Part shown: positions 4,491 through 64,000 of the stretch, one piece after another | How the letters are laid out: each line of letters opens with the position of its first letter | Position numbering within the stretch: the stretch's first letter is position 1 | Assembly: GCF_964204865.1 (NCBI RefSeq) | Contig: NC_135259.1 | Span: 10,850,001-10,914,000, forward strand | Direction of reading: 5' to 3' | Source: Styela clava | Lineage: Eukaryota | Length of the DNA stretch: 64,000 nucleotides | The notes under the pieces: model-generated | The model's database searches: none | What the model saw: only the letters and a program-made list of their open reading frames with translations | Told to the model about the DNA's origin: nothing | Translations under genes and position numbers: made by a program

Positions 4491-7400
4491 ATGAGAGTCA
4501 CAAAAGTACTAGTCATATTGATGGTGTCAATTTATGGAGTTCTTGGGGCAGTTCTGCCAGATTCGTCAGAATCTGTTTATGATGGATCAATGGAATTGGC
4601 CACGGATGTATATTTAAAATGGAAAGTAGAAGGAGACTTTATACTTTTAAGGGTTAGTAGTAAAAATTTTAAAATTGTTTAATGTAAATAAATGAATATC
4701 TTTAATCAAACGATATTCTGTTGTGTTCTATGCTGTCCTCGTTTTGTATAAAACCAGTTAAAAAATGTAATATTTAAAATGGGCAATAAAAATTATACCT
4801 TATGCATAATTCACATATATTACTATGAATTTTATTTAAATATATACAGAATCAATCAATTTTTAAACCCCTTTCCAATATCTAATTTACATTTAAATTA
4901 TAAGCGATCTTCTAAATATGATTTTTGAAATTAGTACGCGTAATCCCGTCGAAAGGCTTCCGGGATTAAATCAAATTATCTAAATCAATATATTGTGCAC
5001 CGATTTTGAAACACGGAACCGTGCTCAGTTTTTTCAATATTACAAAAGTTTTATTATATTTTAAACTTGTTATATCGTTTCAGCTCGACTACATGACGAC
5101 AGGATGGATTGGCATTGGATTTCCTAAAACTACGAAGGCACACGGCATGAAAGACTCTGATATCATAATGGGATGGGTGAATAACAATAAAGGATATGTT
5201 TTGGTAAGTGCAGTGAGCATACTGGGACACTACTTGCAAAGTTTCTTAGTAGTATAAGTTGAATTGGTTAGTCAAACGTAATTTGTTATCGACGTTATGT
5301 CTCATTTCACTATGGCAGCTTTCTTTATTACAAGATTTGTATCATTTTATTTTGATGCAATTTACATTGAATTGAAAATGTCTATGTTTGGGCTATGTAG
5401 CAAAAGTGTTGTGTTTTTAAAGGACGCATACGCAAAGAAGAACGGAGTTCCAGAAGTAGATTCCGCCTCAGATGTTGAGATCATCAGTGCAAAAGAAGAA
5501 GGGGGTTTCACAACCATGGTTTTCAAGAGACCAATCGTTGCAATAAATAAAGATGACGTCACAATTGAGGTATAATTATTCAAACAATTTGCGCAAATTC
5601 TGTTTCAATTAAAAATCCCATACAAATCAAATGTAAGATGATAAGAGTTGTACTCGATTATATTGTAACGGACTTTAAATGAGGAATTTAAATGTTTAAA
5701 TGAGGGGTGTTTTAAAATTTTTTAACGAATTAGATCTTCAGTTTCCTATATTCCCAAATATAATTTTAGATAACAATAGATTATAGGTTATTTGGTAAAC
5801 TCCATTTGTAAATTACAGGTTTAGTTTACATAGATCTTAAAATAATGAATATATTACCACAGCAATATTGCTATTTTATTTGCTGGTAAAAAACCTTGTT
5901 ATACCATTTTGGAAGAGATTAGTCATAAAACTTATAGCTTGCCTGTATGCATTAAGTTCCAATATGCAACTTGTTCTCAGAATCTCAGATTTTTTTGGAG
6001 ATGCGAGAAAAATATACACTGTATTGTTGGTAGTCAAGAAACTCGATATATTTGAATATGTGATTCCAAACTTGATACGATAATCATCCTTGTAGCAAAA
6101 ATTTATTTCATTTGAATTATCCAAAGGACCCGCATTTAGTTGCAATGTATTAAATTTTTGTGGCAAATATGGTTCATTCTAAATTATTTTTAAATTTTGC
6201 AGAAAGGAGAAATTGCAATTATTTGGGCGTATGGAAACATAGGTAGTTTGAGTGAAACTATTTCGGGCGCTGAACACCACTCACAAAGAGGTAAGAAAAT
6301 CAAATTACCAACTTCAAAGGTTGGATAATTTCTAAAATAAGCACTTTACGATCAATTACACGGTAAAAAATTTTATATACATACACTTGGACAATATTTT
6401 ATCTGAAATGTGTGCATATATATGTTTTATGCAAATTTTATTCTAAATTAAACACCTGAAACGATTTATTATTGAGCAATTCAATTCTGAAATAGAACAT
6501 TGACCATAAATTTTTTTTATTTTTTTTTTTGCATTCGAACAATAACATTTCATTATTGTCAGGTCAGGCAAGAATAGCTTTGATACCTGCGGAGAACAAA
6601 GTACGTCCTCGAGGCAAAATACGTAAGTTTAGTTACGGCTTTCTAATCTTAAAACAATTTTAAGCAATTTTTGTCAGATTGAATAATCTTTAAACAAAGA
6701 CGTATTTGACGGGTATTTGAAGTGGTTGAATAAACTCAAAAATTATATCAGGGGATATTTTTGCATTGCGAACCACTTGGTTTTGCCAAAGCCGTCCCAA
6801 TTATAAAAAGAAAAAATTTCTTTTTAAATGTCCTAATATTAATAAAGTTGAAGACTTGGAGGTATGACACTTTTCTTTTTGTGTACGCGATAGTATATCC
6901 GTGTTCCCAGCAAAAACAAACTGAATTTGAATTTAATTTTGTCCATTGATGGCAGATAATACTAGTATTATTGAAATTAAATGAATAATAATGCTTAATT
7001 TTATTTGCTTTTGAAGCGATAATTGAAACTCCCCTTGATCCAAATACTCCAACAAGCGTCCAGAAGCAAGAAAGTGTGACACCAAATGAACACGGTAAGG
7101 TCAACACACCAGTGTCCCCAAATAAACCTAGCAAACCTATGTCCCCAATTACCCCAGGAGAACCAAAGACACGAGGAGGAATTGCGAGACGCAGCAAAAA
7201 TATATATATAACTACCCCAAATGAGGAGAGCATACAAGAAAAAGACACAGCTGAAAATCAAGAAAAGAAGAATGCCACTGAAATTATTCCAAGTGAGTCA
7301 GATAATGTCAATTCTCCAACAACACCCGGTGGATATGACAAGCCAGTAAGTCCACGCAAACCCAACATACATTCCTCGAGTAAAACAAGCACTCCCGTAT

Positions 7401-10400
7401 TATCAGAAATCCAAACCAAAACTGCTAAAGGAAAGTCAAACAAACCTAAATCACCGATGCCGCCAAATAAAACCGACAAACACAAATCACATAAAAGTCC
7501 CGGAAAAGCTGCCAAATCGCCAATGACACCAAGCAACAAAGATGCTTTGAAAGGTAAACCAGAATCGGCAATGACTCCAATTGATCTCGACAAACCCAAA
7601 TCCCCAATGACTCCGGATGGACCCACCAAATCTAAATCAAAGAAGACACCAAGAAACAAAGATGCTTCAAAAGGTAAACCAGAATCAGCAATGACTCCAA
7701 CTGATCTTGACACGCCCAAATCCCCAATGACTCCCGGTAAACCCACAAAAACAAATTCGCCATTGTCCTCAAGTGAATCATCAACCCCGGGTGTACCCAC
7801 CAAATCTAAATCGAAGAAGACACCAAGAAACAAAGATGCTTTAACAGGTAAACCAGAATCAGCAATGACTCCAACTGATCTCGACAAACCCAAATCCCCA
7901 ATGACTCCGGATGGATCCACCAAATCTAAATCGAAGAAGACACCAAGAAACAAAGATGCTTCAAATGGTAAAACAGAATCAGCAATGACTCCAACAGATC
8001 TCGACACGCTCAAATCCCCAATGACTCCCGGTAAACCCACAAAAACAAATTCGCCATTGCCCTCAAGTGAATCATCAACCCCGGGTGTACCCACCAAATC
8101 TAAATCGAAGAAGACACCAAGAAACAAAGATGCTTCAAAAAGTGAACCAGAATCAGCAATGACTCCAACAGATCCAGTTGAGCCTGAATCACCAATACCC
8201 CCGAGTGAACCAATTGAATCTGAATTGCCAGTGACACCAAATGAATCCGTTGAAAGCGAATCTCAAACATATCCAAGTGATTCCCAACTCGAAGAATCGC
8301 GATCGCCAGCACAATCAGGCGGGTATTTCAGATCTAAAAAACTGGAAACACCAAAACCCCAGATACAACGTCACATGATACTCAGGGGAGGATATAGAGG
8401 TCTTGATCAAATGTATGATGACGCAATGTCAAAATCTACCATTTTAGACGTCGAACGAAATATAAAGTTTAGTTGGAATTACAATGATGAATATATTGTA
8501 TTCGAGGTAAGGTTTTGTTATATATTGTATCCTTAGTTGACATCGATGGTTAGGAATCCCCGTCCCACCATTTTACCCAGTCTGTAATCGATTGACCCAA
8601 CCGAAAAAATACCGGTTTTTCAAAAAATATTATCTCTTTTCATATCAGAGAAAATTTGTCATGAGATCCCGCTAATGATTAGTATACGACACTCAACGTT
8701 ATATGACATAACTCGCGCTGACAGATTCAATAAACTTTTAAATAGTGATAATTCATTGTTTTTGTTCGTTACTTACAGGTCTCGATACCAACTCGCGGTT
8801 GGATAGGTGTAGGTTTCGCGCCAGGACCGAATATGGCGGGTGCAGACATCTTTATTGCGGGAATAAGAAGAAATGGAGTATACGCTTCGGTATAGTATTG
8901 AGAATTAAATGATTCGTCAGAACTCTCTCCCATCATATTTATGAATAAATAAGAATTGCAAATTAAAGAATGTTGAATTTAATTGAGAATATATTTTGTA
9001 TTAGTCTTTTGTACTTTTTTCTAATTGGTTAATTTTTGTAACTACACTTTTCCGTTTGCCAAATTTCGTTTTTATACAATTGAAAATATCAGCATCAAAT
9101 TGTCCCAAATACTCGATTGAGACGCTATATTTAAATCACTGCTGATATAATGCTTCTACTCGTGAAATTTTACAAAAAAATTAAATTAAAATGATATACT
9201 AAAACTTTTTTATCGTAATTTTACAAAAAAAAAATTTAAATTAGAATTATATACTAAAACCTTTTCGTCGTAAAGTGCATATTTTTGTCAGTATTTAAAA
9301 ATTTTCTAAGGTTGTCAACGATGAAGGCATAATTTTTATTTTTATTCAATCCCGAAAAGTAAGATATATAAAAGTATTTGATTTCGAATATTCTTTTTTC
9401 AGATTAAAAAAATCTTCAGTAATGATTCAGATAGTTTTAGTTGTATAATCATAGGTTATTTTTTCATAACAGTTCAAAATTTGTAGGTCAGGCATTCTGC
9501 TTCTGTCTATGTTTTGGTAATAGAACTGATGATAAAAAATATTTCAGTGAATGTGTTCGATATAGTCAAAATTAATGATTGGAATGATATGTTACATAAG
9601 AATTTTGTATTTCTAAAGTCTACTGTAGATATAGGGAGAAATGACATAGATCGCGAACTAGTTCTATGCACCGTTCCGTAATACAACTATACAAATGGAC
9701 GCTGTTTATATTTCATATGATTTCGCAGAGTTTTTGATGTTATGATTAAGTTTGTCAAGTAATATACATCGGCAAAATTTGAGAGTAAATGCAAAGTTTA
9801 GATGTCAATTTTGTTTTTACAGGACGCGTTCGCGTATAGAAATGGGAAACCGTCGATTGACGAATCTCAAGATGTCCAAGTTTTGAGATATCTGGAGAAA
9901 GAAGGATTCACCACTGTTATGTTTGCAAGGAAAATTGATACTACCGATGAAATGGATTTAAAGGTGAATACTCGACATAGTTTTCTCTGTGTATATATTG
10001 GATAATATAGAGTCCTACTTCAATAGCTCCTAAGGTTGAGATCTAAGCAGTAATCATAGGGCAAATTGACAAACATAATAGGTAAAATTTTATCTTATCC
10101 TCAAAAATAGCGCAGCACTCTTTGAGTGCAAGATAGCTGGAAAGTATTGAGCAAATTCAAAAAATTAATAGCCTCGTTCGTCGTTTATATATTCATGGCA
10201 TTTATAATTCAAAAACAATGGCTTTGATCAAATGAAATATATTGTCTATTTTCAGATTGATGGCACAAGCAAATATGTTATTTGGGCTTACGGGCGAGCT
10301 GATATGGCGCTAAAGCCTAGGGAATTTTACCACGGTATGAATAGAGGTAAGTCAAACAGTTTTATGTTATACTCGTATGTGGTAATATCATCCCATACCA

Positions 10401-11042
10401 TCCATCAAATATTTGTAAGATTATGTGTGGCATTCAATATTACCGTTATCTCGGTAGTATATTTATTTTCATATCACTCCATATTCATCTGGGTGATGCC
10501 CATTCCCAATGTACGTATTTTTAAATCTTATCCACCATCATCTGCTTTCAGGTGCAAAAATGCTGAATCTCATTGATGGGTCTGGTAAGTTGTTAATATA
10601 TTTGCACTTTAGTCTTTTCTACTTCTTATTTAAAGAGATTCTGTTTAATCAGGAGTCGGAATGACCCTCGTTCGACTAAATATGAAATGCATAAATTTTG
10701 ATGAATCATAAATATAAAAGCAATTTCAATGTATCAATTTTCAATTGTCATGGTTTGTTACTCAACCTCTTAAGGTCATCTGTGACCAGCGGCAAATAAT
10801 TATATATAATCTTACACCACGAGAAGAGACAGAAATTAAAATGTGAAAAAACTTTGATTTCATCTTTATTTAAATATAAACAAAAGTTATTAGTGTTTAT
10901 TTTCTCACGAGTGTATCTGAATCCATTTTGCGTATAAAATAATTAATTATTATAAATGAAAACTTGATATTTCATCACAGGCGGACTTCCGACAAACTTT
11001 CCAATGGCGCCACTGTCTACCGTTCCAGGAAGAATAAAATGA
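4491..11042 (+). CDS. Gene A: secreted 2x DOMON (DOH-type) protein with a long Pro/Ser/Thr/Lys repeat linker, ~834 aa
   Basis: Coding exons 4491-4652, 5084-5203, 5423-5569, 6203-6290, 6563-6622, 7017-8506, 8779-8889, 9823-9963, 10256-10346, 10552-10584, 10981-11042; all GT-AG, total 2505 nt, in frame. Signal peptide MRVTKVLVILMVSIYGVLG. DOMON motifs GWIGIGF..GMKDSD/DAY/WAYG..HHSQRG and GWIGVGF..NMAGAD/DAF/WAYG..FYHGMNRG. Ends TVPGRIK*. Confidence 0.9.
7535..8175 (+). repeat. Coding higher-order tandem repeat in gene A exon 6: alternating 120-nt and 174-nt units (294-nt superunit x2 plus a partial unit)
   Basis: The anchor AACAAAGATGCT (NKDA) recurs at 7535, 7655, 7829, 7949 and 8123 (spacings 120, 174, 120, 174). 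Units encode NKDAxKGKPESAMTPxDLDxPKSPMTP...TKSKSKKTPR. Confidence 0.95.
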
Positions 11043-11688: not shown

Positions 11689-11720
11689 TATAAAAGCCTG
11701 GGGCGTACATTGACTCGACG
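11689..11720 (+). promoter_or_regulatory. Candidate core promoter (TATA box) of DOMON gene B
   Basis: TATAAAAGCCTGGGGCGTACATTGACTCGAC, nearly identical to the block at 33146 upstream of gene C although the flanks have diverged. Confidence 0.6.
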
Positions 11721-12110: not shown

Positions 12111-15100
12111 ATGGCAATGGATTATAAAATGTTAATTATATTTCCATTGTTCTTTTCTGTGGTTTGGGGAGGAAGAGGCGCACCATCACAGGAAATAACA
12201 TATGACGGATCTAAAGATTTGTCCTCTGGTATAAATGTTATGTGGAAAGTAGAAGAAAAGAGTATAGTTTTAAAGGTAAAATGCCGCAAGGGCGAAATGT
12301 TTTCAAATATTTCTATTTTTAATTGCAATTGCGTTGATGAGTTGAGGTAAATTTAAGCCTTCACTCTGACTGTATTAAGTTAGGCATACAGCGAACCAAA
12401 AAGTGTCTAATAATTCCAAATATAGTAGATAAGGCATTTGCTTTTCTCTGATTGAATGTGTGTAAACACAACAAAAAAGTAAAGGCACTGTAATGAATTT
12501 TTTAGAACTGATACACGATTAATAGTGGTTAGAAATCACACCAGAGTTATCCCTGTTTTCATACTTTTATGTCTCACTTTCACATTTTGCTAAAATTATA
12601 GACAATCATACTATTCCGTACAACCCTTCAAATTGGAAATTTCCAAATATGTTAAAATGCTGTTTCTTAAGAGCTACAAATCTCCAGAAAAATCTGTTTA
12701 CAGTATGTATATGTTAATTCCAACATTTTCTTAAAGAGATGGTGTTTTGATTGTTAGATAAATTACTTCAATTTTCTTTACGGGATGTGGTAAATTCGAT
12801 TTTCAATTTATTGAAAGAAGTTTTTTATTTATTTTTTCCTCTCACGACCACTTTTTTACAACAGTTGAAATACAGAGCAACAGGATGGGTTGGCATTGGA
12901 TTTTCAAAATCAAAACATCCACAGAGTATGGCTGATTCTGATATCACAATAGGCTGGGTTACTATGGGCAAAGCGTCTGTGTGGGTAAGACAAAATAAAA
13001 ATTATTTTTGCATGATAATCCCATATAATAATAGCCTTGAAGTCACATAATCGACGATAAAGACAAATAGGAAATGCAAAACTTGCTACAAAATACACGA
13101 GAACTTTGAACAGCAAGTTATTAATTTTTTGACAACTTCGATACTACGTTAATCGACAATAATGCGACAAATACACACAGTGAACAACACAAACTCTTTT
13201 TATAAACCTAGAAATATCCACTTACAGGTATTTATGTGTGTGTGATGTTGCGTGTGCAAATAGAATGAGATTTTGACAACAGTTTTTGGATAAATGAAAC
13301 ATATTACAAAAGCTGAGCCTATTTTGACATTTAATATAATTTCAACTAAAATATTTAATCAGGACGCTTACGCCAAGACAAACGGAGTTCCAGATGTTGA
13401 TAAAAAATCAGAAGTGGAATTGATTAGTGGAAAGGAAGAATCTGGTTTCACTACAATTGTTTTCAGGAGACCAATCATTGCAATGAATGATGATGACGTC
13501 ACAATTCATGTGGGTTGCAAAACGTTAATACAGTCATAAAAAAACAATGGCGAATAAACATTGTGATATGACTCACTTTGATTGGTCAAAGTCATAAATA
13601 TTTTATTTAAATACTCGCAAATATGTAATTTAAAATTAAAATATTTACAGAAAGGTGAAATTGGAATTCTTTGGGCCTATGGAAGATCAGATGTTACAGG
13701 AGGAACTTTGAGCGTTGTAGATTATCATGCGAGAAGAGGTAAAAATCAAGTTATCTATCATAATCCACTTCATCGAATAAAGAATTAATTTTAATTGAAT
13801 ACCATAGTTTTGTATTGCGTTACCCATGATTTATGTCCTTGCAGTCCAAGCGATTGTTTATTTTTGCAATATACAATATTTTTTGAGACTTATAAAAATT
13901 TTAGGAACCATTCAAGGAAAATTTCTCAGTGTTGGCACATTAAAACCTCTCGTCAGTTCATTTTTTGGCTCTTTATTTTATCATCAAAAAGTATTAAACA
14001 CAGTGGTAAAGTTAATAAAGTTACCATCACTCCTACTGCACATGGGCTACTACAGTCAATAAAGTAATACAGTACTCCATAAAACATTCTTGTGATTTTT
14101 ACTAGTAAAAGGATTATACTCTCAAGGTATTTCGTGTGAAGACGAGAAACTAAAATCAAAAGTATCATTTCAGGTTATACAACTCTAACATTAATCCCCA
14201 CAGAAGAAATCGCTAGTGAACCAAGTCTTCCAGGTAAACTATGCTAGAAATTTTATTTGATTGCTTTCAACAGTTTTTGGTAATAGATCCCAATAGACTT
14301 ACCTTAAAGGCATTTATAAACTCCAAAGTTGGAAAAGCCCAATCGCCGTGTTATAACAGTAGTGGATATATATGAACGAATACTAACTATTGCATAAAAT
14401 AACAACAACAGTACAATTATTTATTGCTAGACCCAGCTAAACCAGAAAGTCCAAAAGATGTTGAAGATCATGATGACGCCGATGATGATGACGACAAACA
14501 AGCTCATGAACATGATGATAAAGATTTGAATCATTTCATTTATCTGGATGCAGACAAGAAACTTTTCCTTCGATGGGGAGTCAAAGGTCAAGAAATAACT
14601 TTCAAGGTACGGAACATGCTTTGTTTTCAACGAAGTTTTATCTGTAATAGTTCTCTTTGTAGTTGTTTGTGAACTTAGTATATTTCAAAAACATATCTAT
14701 ACATTTCTAAGCATGTATAACTTTTCTAATATGTAAACTTCATCAAACCTACAAACTGACTGAACTTCATTGAGATTTCAACACTCTGAATGACATAAAC
14801 GACATATAATTTTTACTAATTCGCTATTGTTATGGAAATGTTATTATTAAGAGCGCCTGTGGCGCAACACTAGTTGAAATGCAAAAATCATTTTATTGTC
14901 ATTTTCAGTTGAAAGGAGAAACTCTGGGATGGATGGGAATAGGATTATCGCCCGGACATGGGATGACAAATTCAGACCTAATGATTGTTGGAGTTAACAG
15001 AGAAGGAAAAGCATATGCATATGTAAATAATATTATAAACTATTCAGCAAAAGAGTGTCAAACGTATTCTGGTTGCTGATTACGCACACATGTCGATTAC

Positions 15101-18100
15101 GTATTTAAAAGATCACGTTAGCAAGATTAGGTCCAAATAGCAATAAGTACATAATACATAACGGCTAAATATTACAACGTTACATTCCTCAAGTCGGATG
15201 CAACTACTAGTTAATAAAATCATTTACATATAATATATATAAAACATATTGGATATATTTACAAAATTTACTTATAGATCAGGGTGGTCCAAGGTTGCGA
15301 GGTTGGCAGGCCGCAAAAACTTCTGAGGATGTCTCGCGGGCCGCTGTCGGAGAGAACCCAATAGTCATCACAACATCGGGAGTTTACTCACTTTACATAT
15401 ATTTAGAAATGAGAGTTTACCGTTCTAATCAGTTTAAGGAAGATATGTAAAGCCTTTAGTTATTTTAAAATTGCATCCCGAGAAATCTCGTGGTATTTTC
15501 GGTAGCTTTTCTCGTGTTTGGTTTTGTAATGGCGCTTCAAATTATATTCCCTCGTGACAGATATTACTTGAAAACACACCAGACACTGCAGTTTAACGTT
15601 GTTGTGGGTTAGGAAATACGTTTCCTCAGTTCACCTCGGTCAATCATTTTACCTCATTGTATGATGAATTGTTATATTTGACTAATTTTATTACCTATAT
15701 CGTGAGCAGGCCTAGTGATATCGTCAAAGAACAACCAAGTCCGTCCAAGTTAGGATTCCGGACCCAGCTAAAAAAAAAACTGGATTGCGTGGCGCTAAGT
15801 CAGCTCACATGGCCAACGCTTAAAAATAGAGGGGTGTTTTTGCTAAAATAATAGCGAAAACTGACTTGACGCGAGCTTAAGGTACAACGTTTAGATAAAA
15901 AGTGCGACCCATCTCATCGCCTTGATTCTGTCTGCACAAGACAATCCATTCTCCTTGTACCGATCGCTGGACGTCATTCCAATATTGGCACCGTCTTGAC
16001 GTTTAAAGATACAACTTTGAAATTCCGTGATTTCAACAAACATTAATCCCGATATTGGGGTTGAGAAAAGGGCTATTCGCAGTGGGAATAGTTTTAAAAT
16101 AACTCAAATGTCGCGCTAATGATTTAGTGCACGCTCACTTAATGAAACTATTCGAAATTCGATGATTACAATTAAATTTTACCTTCTTAGGATTGTTTCG
16201 CTCCTGAAAATACTACTCCTTCGGTTGACAAAACCCAGAACGTTGAAATCATTGAATATGATCAGACTGATACTCATACAACAGTCACATTCAAAAGAGC
16301 TCTTGTTACAGATGATGAAAGCGGGAACGATCGATCAATACAGGTTGAATAACTTCTAATTGTTGAATGGAGAAAACAGATATAGATAAAATGTACGATA
16401 AAAACACTCCGTATTGTTACCGCTACATTGATTTGCTAACAACAAAAGACAAACAAATATTTTGACTGGCTTAAAATATAAAAAATATGAGTTTTTTGAA
16501 TTGGTATTTATATACTCATATCTATTTCTTTTGTAAGCCAAAAGTTGTATAACAAAATTGAAAAATATTGTGCAAAGAATTGCATCTTGAAAAAAACTAT
16601 AATCCTGATCGCAAATCACAAATCGTAAACTTCAGTCATCATAGAACTCATCGTTGCAAATCCTATTTTATAAGACTAAAAATGCTCGCTATAAACAGAA
16701 TGCTGATACGTATTTCCTTTGGGCTTATGGATTGTATGACGTATTAGGAGCACCAGGTATCGTCAACTATCATTTTGGACGACGAGGTAATAGAAATATC
16801 ATACATATTATGCTATGATTTAATTAAACAAACTTTTTAATGCAAAATATTGCATGTATGTTTGAGCAAAATACATTGATTAATACTAGTACAAAAATGA
16901 TAAATGTGAAATGTCGTGAGATATTTAATCCGGCAATTAAACAGCCATATTTGATCTTATGAGGGCTATTTCATATACACGCCAGCCTGACATTCCGACC
17001 ATCGTCAAAAATTATTTTACTGTCTATCTATAAAGTGTGGTGTGGTAGCGTGTGCAACATTTTAACTATAATGGACCGTCAACGATATAGTTTTTCCTTT
17101 CATTGCACTAGGTAATTTTTTACCATATCACACCTAAGCTATCTTTTGTCACCAACAATGTAATGAGGTTGTAAAGCTTCAGTTAAACTTGATTTTATTT
17201 TGTTTAGGATACTTGAAATTGAATCTGCTTCATGGGGTGGGAGGTAAAAAATTTTTTTTTTGGTTTTCTTACGAAATAATAAAAACTATCAATTTAGTCT
17301 ATATGGGACGTTCAGAAATTATGTTCCGGGTATTAAATAAAAATAAAATTGCTCATTAGAGGATTAATGTAGAGCAACAAAATTTACAACACTATTGAGC
17401 TATTTTTTCAAAGTTTCGATAAATCTCAAAATATTCAAGATATTTTCAATTATATTGTATATAGACGGCGTAATATTATTGTTAATGTTTAATCATCTAT
17501 TCACAGAGGCAATGAAACCAGCTGAAAGCCCGAAATCACCAGAAGGTAAATCTTATTGTACTTAAATGCATATATACAGTATATATATATATTTTTGCCA
17601 TTCGGATTTAATTTAAAAATTCTAAACTACAAGCTTAGCATAATGATATATAAAAACGTTAGATCGTTTGATAATTTTTCGTTTCTTCGTAAACTAGGCA
17701 ACGTATACTAAATCAATCGGTAACTGAATGTCACGGTGCGAAATAACTAGCCCGCAACTTTATACAGTTATTGAAGTTATTAAATAATATAGTGTGGATT
17801 TTCAATTGGTTTCCGCTGCACATCGCTTTTGTTCAAATGTTAAAATGAACCCTCTGGTATCTTTTCATTTTCATAATTGCGTTCATTTTCTATTTTCAGG
17901 TGTTGAAATGGAAGAGAGTGAAGTACCAGAAGGTGAATATTTCTATAGGAACTCTATACAGAATGTTTTCTGCTTCCCCAACACTTTTCCCAATTGTATG
18001 GATCTCAATAGGTCCACTCAGTGTTCAATAATTTATATAACAAGAGAGCGATACTCAAATATATAGACACGAAAACCAAAACAAAGTAGAAAGTGTATGC

Positions 18101-28993: not shown

Positions 28994-29280
28994 ACAAAGA
29001 CAAGAATGAAGTTTATTCGTCAGAAGGAAAGAAAGAGACTTATGCTAGTATATACCAATGCCTCATCATTTTTGTGCATTTAGATTTAGACAGTACTTTG
29101 ATACTTTGGAGCCAAACATGTCGTATGATTTTGGCGTGATGAGTTAGTTATACGCCAAATGATACAGATGGAATGTATTATTAACAAACCAGCAAAAGGA
29201 ACTAGTTGGAATGACCAATGTTTTTTGTTGGAATGTCTGCATTACATGCATCATCCAATTTTTAATTATAATCCTTTTTA

Positions 29281-29286
29281 AATAAA
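29281..29286 (+). terminator. Candidate polyadenylation signal of gene B
   Basis: AATAAA ~290 nt after the stop codon; a homologous AATAAA lies at 44014-44019 in the alignable 3' UTR of gene C. Confidence 0.55.
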
Positions 29287-32653: not shown

Positions 32654-33145
32654 ATTTAACTTGTAACCGCGATCAATTACTGTTCCACAATCTGTTTTCA
32701 ATTGCGATATAAATTTTAAAACAAAAATTATTTTATTGCATAATCAAACGTTGAGATGTGATATGTGTCGATAAATGTAGTCAAAAGGAATATAGCACAG
32801 ATTTGGGATATTAGAGTAAATCTATATCACATAACAACTGACAGTAAATTTGCAGTCAGCAGTTACATTACTTTGCCTGTGGCTTGTTGTTCAAGTCACA
32901 GCTGTACAATAACAAAGATTGATTTATTGGAATCGCGAAGAAATTAAAAACAAGTAATAATTAAAAGCTTCAAAATATGTCATTAAAGTTACTAAGTTAC
33001 TATTGCGATATCTTTCAGTGAAATTTCTTTTATGTTCACCATGGGTCATACATGGAGCGTGTTTAAGAAACTGAATATTAAAATGCAAGGTCAAAACCGT
33101 TGGTTTCCTTTTTTATTATTTTATTTGATTACGTCGCAAAAACAG

Positions 33146-33177
33146 TATAAAAGCCTGCGGCGTACATTGACTCGACA
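33146..33177 (+). promoter_or_regulatory. Candidate core promoter (TATA box) of DOMON gene C
   Basis: TATAAAAGCCTGCGGCGTACATTGACTCGAC, conserved with the gene B block at 11689. Confidence 0.6.
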
Positions 33178-33565
33178 AAAATCGATTAATCTGCAAAAGT
33201 TGAAAAGTATCTTATTATTAACTTGTTTTTGAAAAAGACACATGTAGTGCTTTTGAACGTGTATCAGTTTACAGTATACGTGACTGTTTAATAGTTTCGT
33301 AGTCAGTTTCGTCAGCTGTATAGTTTTGTGTATGTGTATTTTTCCGCGTTCTACAGCATTGAGAACAAAAATCAAAAGTTCGAAGTTTGATAAATCGTTG
33401 CCTTATATACATGCGAATCATGCCAGGGTTTGAGTAGAAAATAGGAAAAGATCACGAATAGTAGTTGCAGTGATAAAATAAATAAATAGTATATATAATA
33501 AATAACTACATGGAATTAATGAATATTTGATCAATTTAAAGCAGATTCGTCTTAACTTTGCCAAT

Positions 33566-36500
33566 ATGGCAACGGGATATAAAATATTAATTATATTTCC
33601 ATTGTTATTCACTGTGGTTTGGGGAGGAAATGGCACGTCTTCGAAGGAAATAACATACGACGGATCTAAAGATTTGTCTGCTGGTATAAATGTCATGTGG
33701 AAAGTAGAAGAAAAGAGTATTGTTCTGAAGGTAAAATACCGCTAGGACAAAAAAGATTTCTTATTATTACCATCTCTGTTTGAAAGTGTGTTTAGTTAAT
33801 ATTAAGTCTTCTCCCAGGCTAATAATAAGTTGTATTAAGTTGGACAATGTCGAATTGACGAAAGAGAAAGTTTTGATTACTTCCAAATACAGTAGCTTCA
33901 GAGGTATCAAAGACTTTTTGTTTAAAGCTTTCTGAGAATCAATGTGTTAAAACAATTGATAAGAAGTAATTAAATAATATTTAAAAAATTAGAATTTTTT
34001 TTACCAATTTCAGATCAATTTACTAGAAATTAAAATATACCTTTTCACAAAACTGGTGTAACCCAACTTTTGTTTGTATTTATGTCTCATTTAGACATTT
34101 TTGCTAACATTATCAGTAGTCATACTGCTCCGTAGGTTTTTTTAATAGAAAATTTTCAAACTTGGCAAATAATTCAATATTACATAATTGAAGAGATCAA
34201 ATCTGCGGAAAAAATTAAACAGTATGTATATGATAATTTCAACTACTTTTCGACTAAATTGCGTCTAAATAATTTGTCATATGAATGACTTTAATTATTT
34301 TTTTACGAAACGTGGTGAATTCGGTTTCTGATTTATTGCAAGTTATTTATATTTGAACATTTTTTTCACAACAGTTGAAATACAGAGCAACAGGATGGGT
34401 TGGCATTGGATTTTCGAAATCAAAACATCCACAGAGTATGGCTGATTCTGATATCATAATAGGCTGGGTTACTATGGACAACGCGTTTGTGTTGGTAAGA
34501 CTAAAAATAAAGTAAATATAGACAATCTTTAATCATGCTGATCGTTAGCAATTTCAAATAACGATACAATTGTTTAAAGCTTGCCATAATTACCATATTT
34601 GTATCGTTGTAATATGCCCCGTTAAGTCTTCAGACAATGCCTCTGAGATTGTCCATATTAGGGCTTTCAGCTCTCATTTCCCATCATTACATCGCAGCTA
34701 TTTTATAAGTCGCGTACTGTCCATGCAAACGAGACCCCTCAAGTCATAAAATTTGTTTGAAAAACTTTTATATAAATGACGACAATTCTAGCAAAGCGAC
34801 TTAGTTAAAACGAAGCAGTTTAACTCATAATAAAGCTCATCAACCCCCGTACGCAGTCTTTGATTACTTCGATATCTCCTGGAAAATGAATCAAAACACA
34901 GTGCCCGAATCTTTCGATTCAAGCTGCATAAAAATTTTATTACTAGCTCGGTTTGTAGAATTTATTTTTTTAGAAGCCTCCAATAAATGAGCATAGTTGA
35001 ACTAATTTATATGCAGCAAGTCACTTTGTATAACCAACAATCTAACCCTCTCTCCTATAGCAAGTGTGTGTATGCCTGGGTATGTGAGTGGAATGAGAGT
35101 TTGACAACAAATCGCAGAATACGTAAGCATAATTCTAAAGATATAGCACACTATCACATATAATATAATTTTCAACTAAAATTTTATCAGGACGCTTACT
35201 CCAAGGAAAATGGCGTTCCGGATGTTGATGAAAAATCCGAAGTAGATCTGATTAGTGGAAAGGAAGAATCTGGCTACACCACAATTGTTTTCAGAAGACC
35301 AATCGTTGCGATGAATGATGACGACGTTACCATTGAAGTAGGACAGAAAAAATAAAAATTGGTTGTCATATGGGAGCTATAACAGTTATATTGTTGGGTG
35401 CAAGAAGTATGAAAACAAGGAGTACAGTAACAAAGAATATAGTAAATACTTATACAAGCAAAAGTTTGAATCTTTTTTAATGTAAACTTGTAAAACGTGT
35501 TCGTATTTAATACGAAATATTCCAATATTCAATCCGAATCATATACTGCATTAGATGTGACACGTGTCGAAACTAAATTCAATCTTTTAAAAAGTCATGC
35601 TGAGTTAAAGTCTATGACATTAAAATTAATTTCTTTTTATAGAAAGGAGAAATTGGAATTCTTTGGGCGTATGGTAGATCGGATGGTACAGGAAAAACTT
35701 TGAGCTCTGCAAATTACCATGCAAGAAGAGGTAGGAATCATGTTCTTCAGCACAAACCTCCTGCAACGATCAATAATAACATTTTTTATCCATTTCTTGT
35801 TTTGCATTGAGTTACTAGTATTATTTTTTTCTAAATACGTTTTTGTCATATTGGTAATTCTAAATATGTTTGTAGGACAAATATTGTTTCCACACAATTC
35901 TAAAACGCATGGTTATGATCATAGTTAAGTTTCTCAAATTTGACACATTTCTTGCTTCTAATCCTCTGATAAAAAAAAAGCTAATTGAGAACAGTGTTAT
36001 GTATTTTTAACTAATAATCCAATATAACTCACTGCAGTCAATAAAACAATAATAAATGGAATATAATGATAATGTTACTGGTAATAGATCTTCCCCCCTT
36101 AATGCATTTTATGTAACAAAGAGAAATAAAACTTAATATTCCAGGTCATACAAGTCTAACATTAATACCCGCAGACGAAAGTGGTAGTGAACCAAGTGTT
36201 CCAGGTAAACTATTTTGTAAATTTATTTGATTGCTTTCAAAGTCTTTTTATGTTGAATCTCAAAAACGCTGTGTGTTTTGTAAGAATCTATCAAGAATAA
36301 TAAAAAAAAATATGAAACGCCCAATTGGTGTATATTGGTATAAACTATTAAACGAATAATAAACGCAAAATAACAACAACAACCACAATAATGTGTTGCC
36401 AGGTCCAGTTAGACTCGGTTCTCCAAAAGGTGTTGAAGATCATGATGACGACGATGATGATGACCACGAAGAATCTCATGAACATGATGATGAGGAGCTA

Positions 36501-39500
36501 AATCATTTCATTTATCTTGATGCAGACAAGAAACTTTTTCTCCGGTGGGGAGTCAAAGATCAAGAAATTACTTTCAAGGTACGAGACATTTTTAGTTTTC
36601 AATTAATCTGTAACTGTAATGTTTTTTCTGTGAACATAGTATCGTAAAGATATGTTATATAAATTTTGAATTTCAACATCCGTATCATTAACATTGAATT
36701 TTCATTGCGAATTGCGAAATATCATAAGCAAAAATGAATAAATCATTTGTTTGTAATTTTTAGTTGAAAGGAGAAACTCTGGGATGGATGGGAATAGGAC
36801 TATCACCCGACCATGAAATGCACAATGCCGATATCACTATGGTTGGAGTTAACCGAGCAGGAGAAGCATATGCATACGTAAATAACTTTATTAATGCTCT
36901 AACATATAGACTCTAAATTAGTCAGTTTGTTAAAGCTACGCTCAGCTGTTTAATTTTACCCCCAAATCAATATTTTTTAAATAATATATGGTGTTGAACG
37001 CACTGATCCAAAAACATACTTGAATATATCTTCCATATCGCTTTTGTGTCAATTCAAAACCTGACATAAACGGTTCAAATATCACTTATAACCATAAACA
37101 TGCAGACGTATGTAACCACTGCATTAATTCAAAGTAATGAGCATCAATACCAAATTGTATTTTTGAAGATGTATTATGCAACTCTACTAATAGCAATATC
37201 GTTCTATTGAAACTGAACTGCTGCTACTGACCACTCACCCAAGGGTGAATTGTACATGGCGATTTACAAACTATTATTTTACACCCTGCAAAAAGAAACT
37301 GAATAGTTAGCAAAATACATTTACTGTGACTACAATGTCAAATATGGAAAATCCAAATGTAGAAGTTTATGATATTTACTCTCAAAAAAGAAAAAAAAAG
37401 TAAAATAGTTTTCATTTTCGTCCAAAAAAGTCCACAATTATTTGTTACCTCTATCAGGATTGTTTCGCAACTGAGAATACTGTTCCTGCGGTTGACAAAA
37501 CTCAGAACGTTGAAATCCTTGAATATGATCAGACTGATACTCATACAACCGTCGCATTCAAAAGAGCTCTTGTTACAAATGATGAAAACGGAGAAGATCG
37601 GTCGATCCAGGTTGAAAAGCTTTTAATTGGCGACATAGATAACAAGTTATAAGATAAATGTACAAAAAAATTAGATAATAAATGCTTCAATACGTGAAGC
37701 AACCGTTACCCATTTTCCTAATGAGGACGGAAGATAAACTGCCAAATCAAATATGTATTGGGAATTTTTGTATATACATTTATATACTCATAATTATATT
37801 TTTAAAATCCAGGAGTTTTATGACAATTTTAAAGAGATGAATGCTATTATAAAATTTGCACGATAAAAAAACAAAAATATTGCAATCTCGAATCAAAAGT
37901 AAAACTCATGCATAGAATCGTTGCAAATCAAATTTTATAATACTATCTATGCTCGTTATACACAGAATGCTGATACGTATTTCATATGGGCTTATGGATT
38001 GTATGACGTAGTAGGAGCACCGGGTACTATCAACTATCATTTTAGACGAAGAGGTATGAGATATATCATACGCATTATGTTGTATTAAATTAATCATGCT
38101 TTTTAATACCTAATACTCGTTTTCTAATGCTAAGTCTTTTACTTGGAAGTGTGTGATACTGAGAACATTCAGTGAAAGTGAAAACAGTGTCACTATTTTT
38201 CTAACTATTCCTAAATAATTCCTTACTATATTGAAAGAACGAAAGACGAGTAAACTAAAATGTATAACGTCAGATCGAAAGAAATTAATTATAGTGCAAA
38301 AATGCGACAATCAGGTAACAATCAAACAACCAAATTAAACCTTATGATGACTGTTTCATTCCATACGTTTTTCCATCAGTTTAGCACTGCGAAACATTAA
38401 AAGACTTTATTTTATTTTATTTCGTTAAAATGTGTACTTTTAAACCTTGCCACCTTCAAGCCTTAGTATATCATTAACGAAGGGATGATGAGGTTCCGGT
38501 TATAACACTTTGATACAAACTTGATTTTCTTCATTCTTCCAGGATACCTAAAATTGAATCTGCTTCATGGAATGGGAGGTGAGATATTTATGTTTTCCTT
38601 TTTTACCTGTAAAAAGCCCAAAAATATTTTAATGAATCATTGTAATATAAACGGTTTAACTACAACACAATCGAAATGGCAATTTTAGACGGTTTATAAA
38701 ATTTATACAGAGCTGTACGTTTGTAATTATGACATGTTATATTATAAATGAACTTGCCTGTATAAAATGCACTAAAAAGACCAAATTTTGAAAACTACTT
38801 TTAAATTTCTTTTTATTTAAAGTACTGAAAAATCTTAAAAAAAAGATTAATGACATTCATAATTATAAGGTATATGGACAGCGTACTATAATTATTTAAC
38901 CAATTATTTATAGAAGAAATGAAACCAGTCGAAAGTCCGAAATCGCCAGAAGGTAAAATATTCTGTACTTTGATTAACAACCTACTTTTCTTTAGAATTA
39001 AGAGTTTACTTTGAACTCTAAAGTGTAATCGTAAACATTTGATATTTGAAATTTTGTCACAATATTTCATAATAGACAAAATCATTAAAGTTGTAAAAAC
39101 TGTATTAAGCATTTATAATGATTTTATGCAACCTTGTAAAGCGATTTAACATGTCTTATAACGTGAGCTAGGTAAAGTTGGTTTGCAAAGATGACACAGC
39201 AACAGCAATAAGATTGCAAAGCATATGATAAGGATAATACTAAAAACATTCATTTTACATTCCCAGGTGTGGAAACGGGAACGCCAGAACTACCAGAAGG
39301 TAAATAATTCTAGTGAATACAAGGTGTCTGAAATGTTGACTGTTTTCCATTTGTCCCATAATTATCACACTTGCCCCAATTGTACGAATCTCACCTCATA
39401 TAAATACTATAGCCGTCTGACAAAGTATTCCAAGTGTAACAAATGTGATAAATAGAACAGACATGGGACACGTGGTACCTGAAATTATTGATAAACTGGA

Positions 39501-42500
39501 GAAAATATTGTTTCATGCGATTCCACCCAACACAAATCACAAACATTAAAATATCACATATAAATTACTTTTCTATGTAGGATTCATGTACGTTCGAGGA
39601 TACCAAAAACTTGATGAAGCCGGAGAAGTGGTTCTTCAATGGGGTTCTGCTTATTATTCGGAAGCATTGATGTATATACAGGTACAGCGATAGTATTCTT
39701 GATATGTGTATATGTTACGAAACAGGAAAACTGGTGTTGAACTTTCGGTTGTGAAATGATCAGACCGCGTTTCACTTGTTTATTTAACCGTCTCACAACA
39801 TTAATACAACAATAAGAGGCTTGAGCAGAATATATATCTAATTCATTTGTTTGTAACACTTTTGCCGCGATTTCATGAATAATGATTAGGCTGTAAGCAG
39901 TAATATGAAACGTTTCTATTTATACCGGATGTGTGTACTTGACAACGAACTGAAAAAATCCTGATTTATCGTGTATCCAAAAATAAATATCTCAAAGTTC
40001 TTATAGGTTTTGTATAAGTGGATGTATTTGAAGTATATATGCTGGAGTACGTTTCATACTTACTTTTATAGACAATATTACGATATATACGCAATATTTT
40101 TAACATTTTAAAGTACTTTACTATTTACTTTGTAGATTTCCGCCCCAACAACAGGGTGGGTTGGATTTGGACTATCACCTGGCGATTCTATGAAGGATTC
40201 TGATTTAGCTGTGGCAGGAATAAAAGATGGAACCTCGTACATTTTTGTGAGTTTGAAGACGTTTTATAATTTTTTTTTCTCGAAGATATAGGGCTACTCT
40301 AAGACTTAGTTTTATGTTATACTATCAACTTCCTTGTGCAAAATGTGCATTCATTGTTCTTCTTTCTTATAACTTTTTTGTTCAGATTTTTCTGATTGAA
40401 TTACTAAAAGCATAATATTGGATGATTTAATGTATAAGTCCGAAAACTGGTTATGCGCGCCGTTTATTTCGAGTTTTTTAATAATATTAAATTGAATATG
40501 GATTTTTTTTAAGGACTTATATGCTACAAAAAATACTTTGCCAATGGTTGATGCAAAACAAGATATCACGCTAATTCAAGCCGTTGAAGATGGGCCAAGA
40601 ACCATCGTTATGCTATTGAAAAAATACAAAAGCGAGGACACAGAAAATGACATTAACATCGTGGTACGAATATCGTTTATTTTTCATTTTACTCATTTCA
40701 ACGATTTATTGAACAAATTCGTTACTATACGTTATTATTCGGTGAACAACCGAGGGGCTGCAAACTACGTTGCGTTTAAGTTTTTGCTAGAATAAAAAAA
40801 ATAATAATAAAAAAGGGTTCATCTTTATAGGAATACAAAAGTTTTAATTTATAAATATTGATAGTTTTTGTATCAAACACACTAGGTAGGAAAAATGAAT
40901 GTACTTTGGGCTTATGGACAAACAGATGTCGATGGAACGCTGACTGGAATGAATTATCACGGACGAAACAGAGGTATGTGACTTTAATGCACATACGCGG
41001 TACAGAACCAACAACGAAAATGATCATAACTCTAAAATTTTGTTTTAAAATTTTGTTGTAACATTTACGTAAGCCATAATTCATCGACTTTCTCATAATA
41101 TTAAAGATGACAAAAAACATTATTTTATGCAAAACAACAAAATGTACTTTTAGTAACAACGTTAACCCATCGTGCATATAGTTGTTGTGAATATCAAAAA
41201 GTGTATAAATAATTGTTCCATATTAAGGGCACGCTGAAGTGGAATTTATACCGAGTGATCCTAGCCTTATTCCAAGTAAGTTCAATTTTTACTGCTTTGT
41301 TCGTTGTCTAATATTTCAGAGCCGTTTTTTTCGACCAATGCAATATTTATGATTTAGCTTCATGACCATTACTACATAAGTGCAGTTGCTAACGAGGAAA
41401 TATTTTAATAAATTTTGAAGGCACGGTAGTATTCTGCGTATAAATGAAAACTCTTAGTAATGTTATATAATGAACGTTTCAAATGCCAATTTTAAACTTT
41501 GTATATTGATGAATTAAAATTAAAACCAAATCGGTGGTGATTAATTTTATTTGATCCGTATAAATATATATTTTTTCAAAGTGGATGGACATTCACCCGG
41601 AAGTCCGAAGTCACCAAAATTAGGAACTGGAACAGACAGTCCCGACTCTATAAAATCGCCAAAGACCCTAGGTGTGACTGGAATGTCACCACCAAGCCAG
41701 TCAGGACCTGGTATAGCAAAATCTCCAATTAGTCCGGATAGTCCAGATACTGGTACGTCTCATACTCCTGTGGGTCCAAATAACATTAGATCGCCGATGA
41801 GTCCTAATACTGGCAAGTCTCCACAAAGTCCGGAAAGTTCAAAGAAACCTCCTCAGATAAGCAGACCGGTTCGACGTAAAAGAATTTTCCAGGGTGGCGC
41901 TACGGATATTGACAAATTGTTTGATGACGATAAAATGTATAAACAGGCAGTTTTAAATGAGGCTCATAAAGTGAATCTCAAATGGGCTTATAATAAGGAC
42001 TACATTGTGTTTCAGGTTAGTTAAATTCTAAGTAATTCGCCGTACAAATCTTATTGCAACTGTAATGACTAATGAGCATACCAAACTTTCGTACATTTTA
42101 AAAAACATGTTTGATGCAGATATCCAATTGAAATTTAGATATCGATTCTCACAAATGGATGGATTGGAGTGGGCTTCTCACCAGGACCGAATATGGCCAA
42201 GGCAGATATTGTTATTTCAGGAGTACGAAGGGACGGAGTATATGCACTAGTAAGTATTTAACGAAGCAACACGGTAACATGTATGCTATACAGTCCGACT
42301 TTCTAGAAATAAATCAGTTGCATCAACAACTTTCTTAGGAATACGATTGAACAACTATACTGTGACCCTATAACACTGCATTTGGACACCGGAACGTAGT
42401 ATTTGTACCAGGTTAGGGTTAGGCCATAATTTCAGATACAAATACTGCGGGAGTCACTTGGCTAGTCCCCGAACTCGTAATGGAACTAAAATAAGGAAAA

Positions 42501-43845
42501 TTGGAATAAAATTATGGCCTAATTCTAACCTGGTACATTTACTACGTTCCGGTGTCCTCCATCTTGGTTCACATACTTCAGGAGTACCCATTTTGGCTCT
42601 TTTAACTCGCAGGACGCATACGCATCCAGAAATGGTAAACCACAGATTGATTTGTCACAAGATATAAAGGTTCTCAGATACGTAGAAACTGAAGGCGTAA
42701 CGACAGTTACGTTTGCAAGGAAACTGGATACAACGGATTCTATGGATAACAAGGTAAAAGCATAATATAGAATAATTTAGGGCTCTACTACTCTAAACAA
42801 AAAAACTAGTATAATATATATTGTACAAATTGCAAAAATTAGGAAACATGATCTAAATAGGCAGTTATGGAAGCGAGCAGGCACACATATGCATTTCATC
42901 AAGTCCGACAATGAACCGAGATCATTATATCAACACATATAGGGTCCAATAAAAAAGCCAAATATTTCAGTATCAAATACAATATAAAAATATTTATACA
43001 AGCCAAAATAATTTTTGATGTGAAAAATTTTAAATACCTAATGCCAATTGTTCTGTTGTCGACTTTTCATAAAAGATTTAATTCTAACGTGCGTTTTGTT
43101 CAGCACTTTTGACTATAGGTCTAACAAACTCATATACACTGTGTTATTATATCTTTTTTCTTTTAGAATCACGTTTTTACATAAATATAAGGTGACAGTA
43201 ATGCTGTCATAATGCTTCGTATGAAAACCTGTTTATAGAATTTTTGGTATAAAACACTGTTATACAACCGCACCCTGTAACAATACTATTCTTTCATATA
43301 TGTTGATTAAAGATTGGTGACAGTAAGTACGTGATATGGGCATATGGAAGAGCTGATTTTGCAAAAAAGCCAAGAAACTTCTATCATGGATCCAACAGAG
43401 GTAGTGCAAATTCAGTACATTCCAGTCTACGTATTAATCATTTAAATGAGTTTATCAATATATGGTTATCAGTAACTTTATATTCTAAGAAATTTGCCAA
43501 GTATAAATAAAACTAGTAAGTATATTCATTTTTGTATTCTCCTGATGGGTACCAAACTTGTGTTCGGAATGAAACACGAAAATCTTACAAAATCTGTTCC
43601 AAGAGTATTTTTTATTGAGACAATTAGGCTCCAATAAATTTATCTTTTTTTTCAATTCAGGATCAAAAATGCTGACTCTGATTGATGGTTCAGGTAAGCA
43701 ACTTTTTCTAAGTTAATAAACACTTTGCATGTTTGTGATACGTGATTAAAAATTTCCTATTTAACGTTGTGAATATTTTACAGGTGGCTTGGCGGCAGAT
43801 TTCGAAATGAATTCACTAGTTCTTGTACCAGGAAAGTTGAAGTAG
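33566..43845 (+). CDS. Gene C: secreted 4x DOMON protein (D1-[HD-D2-D3]-linker-D4), 23 coding exons, ~861 aa
   Basis: Exons 33566-33730, 34375-34494, 35191-35337, 35643-35730, 36145-36204, 36403-36578, 36764-36877, 37458-37610, 37966-38053, 38543-38578, 38914-38952, 39267-39299, 39581-39681, 40136-40246, 40514-40663, 40886-40973, 41228-41275, 41582-42015, 42139-42249, 42613-42753, 43313-43400, 43661-43693, 43784-43845. Total 2586 nt, in frame; exon sizes equal those of gene B (cassette 1) except the linker exon. Ends LVPGKLK*. Confidence 0.9.
42384..42584. mobile_element. Fold-back/MITE-like element with ~50-bp inverted arms containing GGTTAGGGTTAGG
   Basis: GGACACCGGAACGTAGTATTTGTACCAGGTTAGGGTTAGGCCATAATTT from 42384 is mirrored by AAATTATGGCCTAATTCTAACCTGGTACATTTACTACGTTCCGGTGTCC ending at 42557. 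The following CATCTTGGTTCACATACTTC resembles the arm of the element at 50954-51048. Confidence 0.78.
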
Positions 43846-63842: not shown

Positions 63843-64000
63843 GTAAAACTAGAATTCGGTTGGAAACCGGAAACTTATCGATCGAAGGTTAGGGGATCCC
63901 CCAAAACAGTGGTCTTACTCCATAGTGACACCTTGTGTCCTATCACTAATTTATTAATAACTCGCTAATTATACGACATAATTCATCCAAAATTAATAGA

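Follow-up and report, generated by a model that had tools for sequence, protein, structure and literature searches.

Three tandem paralogues in the genome of the tunicate Styela clava are, on a modest balance of probability, secreted b-type cytochrome chains acting as extracellular electron carriers. The genes lie on the forward strand between positions 4491 and 43845 of the DNA analysed here (the window), which comprises 64,000 nucleotides (nt) of contig C13 (10,850,001-10,914,000) of the 377-Mb Styela clava assembly, contains 0 N and has a G+C content of ca. 33%. Their products are expressed, selected, secreted-type proteins built of DOMON domains, with neither a membrane anchor nor a catalytic domain. 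Metal handling and an oxidative chemistry of the tunic are known traits of this animal; the DOMON is, to our knowledge, among the most widespread extracellular domains without a settled function in animals.

The first-pass annotation of this DNA had described tandem genes encoding a signal peptide, two, six and four DOMON domains and linkers only, and exact mapping, Pfam matches and hydropathy agree on this architecture. Gene 1 is NCBI LOC120337234; its product is identical to XP_039260892.2 (database protein P0001) by exact spliced mapping, with the stop codon TGA, and the 514-amino-acid (aa) open frame at 6992-8533 shows 100% identity with the same protein. Gene 2 represents isoforms X3/X6 of NCBI LOC120337231, the exact mapping of P0004 ending at a TAA stop, and its 34-exon, 1227-aa model is identical to isoform X6. 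For gene 3, exon boundaries were carried over from gene 2 by DNA alignment, giving a model with no stop codons within the frame and GT-AG at all introns. Whole-protein searches used the database proteins P0001, P0004, P0007 and P0028, exons were searched singly, and the joined gene 3 model was analysed by script. The three genes are as follows:

4491-11042, forward strand: gene 1, 11 exons, 834 aa; signal peptide, DOMON A, linker, DOMON D and a 19-aa tail.
12111-28993, forward strand: gene 2, 34 exons, 1227-1240 aa; signal peptide and DOMON A-B-C-B-C-D.
33566-43845, forward strand: gene 3 in the model proposed here, 23 exons, 861 aa; signal peptide and DOMON A-B-C-D.

Twelve M-x-x-(S/A)-D motifs are present, all on the forward strand (5144, 8830, 12925, 14960, 19453, 21508, 24697, 26988, 34435, 36815, 40187 and 42190). 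The earlier claim that every one of the 12 domains keeps the Met of this motif and a C-terminal His was confirmed by the motif scan and by an alignment of the 12 domains, in which W, GWxGxG, M, D, N..P..D, D..I, WAYG and H...RG are invariant (12/12). Four Asp residues are likewise invariant across the 12 domains and form a cluster matching the putative metal site behind the pocket of DBH; besides that site, a pocket for small molecules has been described in the DBH DOMON (PMC4846438). The domains fall into four types, A to D, with 26-36% identity between types and 52-94% within a type. Each spans four exons, with a further mini-exon coding for the last strand, and the 'AKML(N/T)LIDGSG' sequence following each D domain is this last strand, not a tail signal. 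The parts of the three genes are distributed as follows:

4491-6622, forward strand: gene 1 domain A, exons 4491-4652, 5084-5203, 5423-5569, 6203-6290 and 6563-6622; Met (GMKDSD) in 5084-5203, His (EHHSQRG) in 6203-6290, last strand in 6563-6622.
7017-8506, forward strand: gene 1 linker exon of 1490 nt, its 3' end coding for the first strands of domain D.
8779-11042, forward strand: rest of gene 1 domain D and tail, exons 8779-8889, 9823-9963, 10256-10346, 10552-10584 and 10981-11039, then the stop; Met (NMAGAD) in 8779-8889, His (YHGMNRG) in 10256-10346, last strand (AKMLNLIDGSG) in 10552-10584.
10981-11039, forward strand: gene 1 tail exon, with the stop directly after.
12111-14233, forward strand: gene 2 domain A, Met at 12925 (SMADSD).
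14431-17243, forward strand: gene 2 domain B, copy 1, Met at 14960 (GMTNSD), with an Asp/His-rich acidic stretch ahead in the same exon.
18629-20799, forward strand: gene 2 domain C, copy 1, Met at 19453 (TMKDAD).
21108-22870, forward strand: gene 2 domain B, copy 2, Met at 21508; 94% identity to copy 1.
23889-26018, forward strand: gene 2 domain C, copy 2, Met at 24697; 93% identity to copy 1.
26382-28993, forward strand: gene 2 Ser/Pro-rich linker and domain D, Met at 26988 (NMARAD).
28752-28784 and 28932-28990, forward strand: gene 2 mini-exon (last strand) and tail exon, then the stop.
33566-36204, forward strand: gene 3 domain A, Met at 34435.
36403-38578, forward strand: gene 3 domain B, Met at 36815 (EMHNAD), with an acidic Asp/His-rich lead-in; the acceptor of its first exon is ambiguous (36403-36472).
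39581-41275, forward strand: gene 3 domain C, Met at 40187 (SMKDSD).
41582-43845, forward strand: gene 3 Ser/Pro-rich linker and domain D, Met at 42190 (NMAKAD).
43661-43693 and 43784-43842, forward strand: gene 3 mini-exon (last strand) and tail exon, then the stop.

The sole hydrophobic segment is an N-terminal signal-like stretch, modelled by AlphaFold2 (AF2) as a helix at residues 2-18 of P0001. Beyond the N-terminus of the three proteins no KD19 window exceeds 1.6 and no transmembrane helix was found, while the C-termini of ca. 19 aa (GL..DF.MN.LVLVPG.LK) are short and non-hydrophobic, without a glycosylphosphatidylinositol (GPI) signal as judged by hydropathy, no dedicated GPI predictor having been applied. 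The absence of a transmembrane helix and a GPI-type tail, as first described, is thereby borne out by hydropathy. Each protein contains 0-2 cysteines. The linkers of the family are Ser/Thr/Pro/Lys-rich, with Met in SPMTP-like motifs, and are probably O-glycosylated. That of gene 1, Ser/Thr/Pro/Lys/Met-rich, places 470 disordered residues between domains A and D, and residues 184-650 of the P0001 model fall below 50 in predicted local distance difference test (pLDDT) score. Within it a 294-nt (98-aa) unit is tandemly repeated 2.2 times at 7525-8174, and P0002, an older or allelic gene 1 protein from another record, is shorter by exactly one 98-aa unit, which suggests copy-number polymorphism of the linker repeat. 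B-type domains are preceded, in the same exon (14431-14606, 21108-21280 and 36403-36578), by a run of 20-30 Asp/His/Glu residues, e.g. DHDDDDDDDHEESHEHDDEE, a candidate cation-binding stretch.

Assignment to the DOMON family is firm, as the first-pass annotation had proposed. Against PF03351 (DOMON, DoH type; curated cut-off 32.7 bits), P0001 scores 168.5 bits over 2 stretches and P0007 476.1 bits over 6, both well above the cut-off, with single exons giving 27-35 bits each; matches to PF16010 (CDH-cyt) are weaker, at 31 bits for P0001 and 111 bits for P0007. The AF2 model of P0001, built from a 60-row alignment, shows 10 strands and pLDDT >90 in both domains and adopts the DoH-type beta-sandwich fold, as in the DBH DOMON. 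Human DBH provides the best solved sequence relative (profile E 1e-25), and VIA-align of the predicted fold against its DOMON (4ZEL) gave Z 18.6, with a root-mean-square deviation of 2.4 Å over 147 residues. Alignment with the haem-b cytochrome domains of CDH and PDH gave Z 14.0-14.5, spanning CDH residues 11-190 and hence including His176, followed by the haem subunits of ethylbenzene dehydrogenase (EB_dh) and Nxr (Z 13.4 and 12.5) and by sugar-binding CBM9 (Z 8.0-8.2).

The conserved pair itself recalls the haem ligands of related domains. A profile built from 14 single-DOMON homologues aligned the family Met to the haem ligand Met74 of the MtCDH cytochrome 4QI3 (E 6e-4) and also to the Met of the 6JT6 cytochrome, whereas in human DBH the Met column holds Glu and neither the His nor the Arg is present, in line with the published view that DBH is without haem ligands (PMC4846438). 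In a 60-sequence alignment (A2), the rows of which were drawn from Met/His-positive matches, M708 and H799 are invariant. M90/H174 of HYP1, the latter matched to CDH H176, and M286/H379 of CG8399 are described as haem-b ligands (PMC10784544, PMC10691727), and the same pair is so treated in the DOMONs of CYBDOM proteins and AIR12 (PMC10784544, PMC10691727, PMC4846438), while DBH and sugar-binding DOMONs do not have it (PMC10691727, PMC4846438). The first-pass suggestion that Met and His serve as haem ligands in related DOMONs is thus upheld by the Met74 alignment, by the literature and by a cytochrome-like fold (Z ca. 14, vs Z 8 for CBM9). Keeping the pair is not special in itself, since Met occupies the ligand column in ca. 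85% of 421-524 DoH-family domain matches and the pair is therefore the family default. In favour of haem binding, all 12 domains keep M, H, RG and the four Asp despite only 26-36% identity between types. Paralogous domains are under purifying selection, with a ratio of non-synonymous to synonymous substitution (dN/dS) of 0.14-0.27 in 9 of the 10 pairs for which it could be estimated; the exception, at 0.56, is the pair of A domains from genes 1 and 2.

It is somewhat more probable than not that each domain binds one haem b, with its Met and His as ligands, as in the CDH/AA8 cytochrome, AIR12 and CYBDOM proteins. With one haem per domain, the proteins would carry single electrons outside the cell and have 2, 6 and 4 redox centres. 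This second step, carriage of electrons in the manner of AIR12 or free AA8 but with several centres per chain, is proposed with lower confidence. Reduction would be by ascorbate or a membrane reductase, and electrons could pass onward to Fe(III)/Cu(II), to quinones or to the secreted MOXD1-like copper monooxygenases encoded in the same array. A redox role draws support from homologous arrays, which are repeatedly found fused to a reductase or a copper oxygenase: among 30 multi-DOMON homologues with large extra regions, 10 carry an NOX/FRE-type ferric reductase (Ferric_reduct), 9 a copper monooxygenase and 2 a cytochrome b561.

Several points weigh against haem-based electron transfer. We know of no animal DOMON-only protein for which haem is supported by experiment. 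Neither the homologue profile nor a larger profile from A2 reached a residue-level alignment of the family His with that of CDH, and its proposed equivalence to CDH His176 is drawn from its position, from published alignments of related DOMONs and from the span of the structural alignment. As a family default, the Met/His pair could partly reflect ancestry, and the nearest solved relative, the DBH DOMON, has no haem bound (PMC4846438). No electron donor or acceptor was identified, b561 genes being found on contig C9 only, and the long mucin-like and acidic linkers would equally fit a matrix or adhesive role.

That last role defines the best-surviving functional alternative, in which the proteins are non-redox matrix or adhesion glycoproteins whose DOMONs bind sugar, catechol/DOPA, ascorbate or protein in the tunic or blood, the Met/His pair being a structural leftover and the conserved Asp cluster a site for Ca2+ or another metal. 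It is regarded as rather unlikely. The haem-free DBH DOMON, with its putative metal site and small-molecule pocket (PMC4846438), is a fitting precedent; all four Asp of that DBH-type site are invariant in the 12 domains, and long Ser/Thr/Pro linkers and Asp/His-rich acidic stretches are present. Coral DOMON proteins have, moreover, been classed with extracellular matrix proteins and are induced at settlement (PMC3204972). However, sugar binders and DBH are without the Met/His pair that 12/12 domains here keep under purifying selection, and the fold match to CBM9 (Z 8) is far weaker than that to cytochromes (Z 14). Nearby Styela paralogues also speak against a leftover pair: Met has been lost in 2/2 domains of LOC120338411 and in 4/12 of LOC120338002, indicating that its loss is tolerated where the function is absent.

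A second alternative retains haem binding and dispenses with electron transfer, the DOMONs holding or carrying haem for scavenging or buffering, or storing haem or iron. Stolidobranch ascidians accumulate iron. The same ligand conservation, the many sites per chain and Asp/His-rich stretches that could bind metal ions would suit such a role. Yet six-coordinate Met/His ligation is, as general knowledge has it, typical of electron-transfer cytochromes (CDH, AIR12, CYBDOM) rather than of haemophores, and homologous arrays are fused to reductases or copper oxygenases, not to transport modules, making this alternative improbable.

A bolder form of the electron-carrier reading envisages soluble 'b-haem wires', in which 2-12 DOMONs with Met/His-ligated haem b would relay electrons over tens of nanometres through the extracellular matrix (e.g. 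the tunic or blood plasma), feeding secreted MOXD1-like copper monooxygenases or reducing Fe(III). Such chains would be the animal analogue of multihaem c-type conduits in bacteria and an unattached form of the protist DOMON arrays fused to NOX-like ferric reductases; the idea is speculative and considered unlikely.

Genes 2 and 3 are likely to be separate, giving three genes in all. This is favoured by the splicing of the gene 2 3' end and the gene 3 5' end, by the conservation of gene 3 exons and by low dN/dS. Contigs of four runs (X1-X4), taken as RNA because they carry GT-AG joints (no run being recorded as RNA), were aligned to 28500-34499. The last two introns of gene 2 (28529>28752 and 28784>28932) are spliced in contigs of 4/4 runs, which also extend its 3' untranslated region to ca. 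29.2-29.5 kb. The junction between exons 1 and 2 of gene 3 (33730>34375) appears in contigs of 2 runs, continuing into the start of exon 3. These gene 3 contigs start at 33514-33539 with 24-39 unmatched letters upstream, and a search of the window and of the 108 kb upstream of it gave no match to a 30-mer from one such 5' loose end, which could stem from a trans-spliced leader or a remote 5' exon.

NCBI gives a different picture, in which genes 2 and 3 form one locus, LOC120337231, with six isoforms. Of these, X3 and X6 terminate within gene 2, whereas X1, X2, X4 and X5 join its first 20 exons to the last 15 of gene 3 by a 22071>37966 jump; exons 1-3 of gene 3 form a separate 149-aa model, XP_077972848.1 (P0028), which reads through into the intron after exon 3. 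Under such a merged locus the 5' end of gene 3 would be a truncated 149-aa gene, and products would have 2, 6 and 6 (or 1) domains. The four isoforms with that structure and the ending of XP_077972848.1 after exon 3 favour it. Set against it are the spliced 3' end of gene 2 with its untranslated region in four runs and the splicing of gene 3 exon 1 to exon 2 and on into exon 3. The jump also skips 16 kb containing intact exons. Gene 3 exons as a whole share 82-95% identity with gene 2, with 0 indels, compared with 35-69% for introns; exons 4-8, absent from all NCBI models, keep frame and GT-AG borders at 82-88% identity without indels, and dN/dS of gene 3 domains against their paralogues is 0.15-0.27. 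Since B-type exons are near-identical, misjoined short-read models are likely, and the merged locus is thought unlikely. A pseudogene reading was rejected, the frames being intact, dN/dS low and the RNA spliced. XP_077972848.1 is named 'DBH-like monooxygenase protein 2 homolog', although it has no monooxygenase domain; its homologue search matched only itself.

The three genes belong to a wider array. Of the 109 exons matched by PF03351 across the genome, the majority fall at 10.59-10.89 Mb of C13. The left part of the array (10.596-10.760 Mb) holds MOXD1/DBH-like genes with Cu2_monooxygen exons and two DOMONs each, and the right part (10.780-10.894 Mb) is DOMON-only, with 31 domains in ca. 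114 kb including those of the window. Four DOMON-only genes stand just upstream:

C13:10,780,000-10,850,000: LOC120338136 (2 domains), LOC120338410 (3), LOC120338411 (2) and LOC120338002 (12).

The family of three intact genes first described therefore holds for the window itself; NCBI does not have gene 3 as one gene, and the family extends upstream through these four. A similar distinction applies to the reported lack of partners. Within the genes it stands, neither Cu2_monooxygen domains (PF01082/PF03712) nor cytochrome b561 (PF03188) being found in P0001 or P0007. For the neighbourhood it does not, as MOXD1-like copper monooxygenase genes occur 95-260 kb upstream in the same array. The window holds no PF01082 exon match, the nearest being at 10,757,937-10,758,113, and genome matches to PF03188 are confined to contig C9. 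Cu2_monooxygen exons amount to ca. 26 loci (the C13 array plus ca. 20 others on C1, C3, C5, C10, C14 and C20), a large MOXD1/DBH-like expansion in Styela clava.

In a maximum-likelihood tree, 39/39 Styela DOMONs, including two from the Styela MOXD1 homologue, form one clade (support 97/92; the root was not established), pointing to a lineage-specific radiation related to the MOXD1-type DOMON. Types A-D each pair with one domain of LOC120337511, and a search with the D domain of P0001 returned Styela proteins only, within the length band. An exhaustive HMMER search found 1860 relatives in all. Multi-DOMON forms among them include testate amoebae with tyrosinase plus 7 DOMONs, or 12 DOMONs with EGF modules, one protein with 7 DOMONs and cytochrome b561 and a metagenomic one with 20 DOMONs; DOMON-only relatives with 3-9 repeats occur in a coral, a sea anemone and a ciliate, and ESM Atlas holds single-DOMON clusters from rotifers, nematodes, ciliates and plants. 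Tandem DOMON arrays have arisen several times, because the domains of each lineage cluster together in the tree.

Elsewhere in the window, a single open frame at 476-1327 (reverse strand) encodes a collectin-like protein, with collagen repeats ahead of a C-type lectin domain (Pfam Lectin_C 1.5e-14, Collagen 9e-10). At 46807-47832 (reverse strand), a 342-aa open frame with several hydrophobic segments and no Pfam match may encode a multi-pass membrane protein. Near-identical exons at 54183-54515 and 63570-63965 (forward strand) match the AMP-binding enzyme family PF00501 and probably belong to tandem acyl-CoA synthetase or FATP-like genes. In 4/4 RNA runs, contig depth is high over two short intergenic stretches, 30300-30499 and 32100-32299, and loose ends are numerous on either side; both stretches look like dispersed repeats.

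A partner-free family with 2-12 DOMONs per protein offers a clean system in which to ask whether animal DoH-type DOMONs bind haem b and whether tandem DOMONs can relay electrons. Were haem binding true, the DOMON of invertebrate MOXD1-like monooxygenases, most of which keep Met, His and Arg, would be suggested as a built-in cytochrome, the attachment of 3-8 DOMONs to ferric-reductase membrane modules in protists would be explained, and an extracellular redox system in tunicates would be indicated. If no haem is bound, the genes simply represent a family of matrix proteins with a lineage-specific expansion of the usual kind.

Concerning novelty, no paper was found in the literature on DOMON-only multi-repeat proteins or on these Styela genes. 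The earlier suggestion of possible novelty holds for the genes as uncharacterised. It does not extend to the architecture, which also occurs in other Styela genes, cnidarians, amoebae and ciliates, nor to DOMON-only cytochromes, already known as plant AIR12 (PMC10784544) and fungal free AA8 (10.1101/2025.09.02.673750, PMC13575373). AIR12 is comparable in being extracellular, with a DOMON alone, the Met/His pair and no fused catalytic domain, and is reducible by ascorbate (PMC10784544). Unlike AIR12, which carries a GPI anchor and a single domain, of the DUF568 subtype, the Styela proteins are unanchored and combine 2-6 DoH-type domains with long linkers; AIR12-type membership was rejected, as no C-terminal hydrophobic GPI signal was found by hydropathy. 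The CDH cytochrome and free AA8 (4QI3, 1D7B, 6JT6) share the beta-sandwich fold (Z 14.0-14.5) and the Met aligned on Met74, and are secreted electron shuttles to copper enzymes (LPMOs) which also occur stand-alone (10.1101/2025.09.02.673750, PMC13575373). They are, however, single domains of PF16010 rather than PF03351, with 11-16% identity.

CYBDOM proteins (SDR2/FRRS1, CG8399, HYP1/CRR) resemble the Styela family in their DoH-type DOMON, S-x-D-x-x-M-G-x-D-like motif and C-terminal His, and in these reductases of ferric or cupric ions the outermost haem is believed to sit in the DOMON (PMC10691727, PMC10784544). There the domain is tethered to a b561 membrane domain, which is absent from the Styela genes and from contig C13, and membership was rejected with no PF03188 and no hydrophobic segment beyond the signal peptide. 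DBH/MOXD1 supplies the closest solved structure (4ZEL DOMON), and DOMONs of the Styela MOXD1 homologue fall in the same clade; the Styela proteins, on the other hand, have no Cu2_monooxygen domain, and human DBH is without the Met, His and Arg kept here. DBH/MOXD membership was rejected on the absence of PF01082/PF03712. In the consensus of ca. 25 invertebrate DBH/MOXD-like proteins in A2, a share biased by the Met/His-positive rows, the DOMON retains Met, His and Arg at positions occupied by Glu, Ser/Gly and Met in human DBH (4ZEL); many MOXD-like enzymes may thus carry a haem-competent DOMON.

Compared with CBM9 sugar-binding modules (Z 8.0-8.2), the Styela domains keep the Met/His pair. The multi-DOMON arrays of Arcella, Pyxidicula, Protocruzia, Montipora, Actinostola and metagenomes (to 20 repeats) are alike in their tandem DoH repeats with Met mostly kept, some being DOMON-only, but are of independent origin, none is characterised, and in many of them a ferric reductase, b561, tyrosinase or EGF module is attached. 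The Styela proteins are an uncharacterised variant within the known DOMON family, rather than a new kind of protein.

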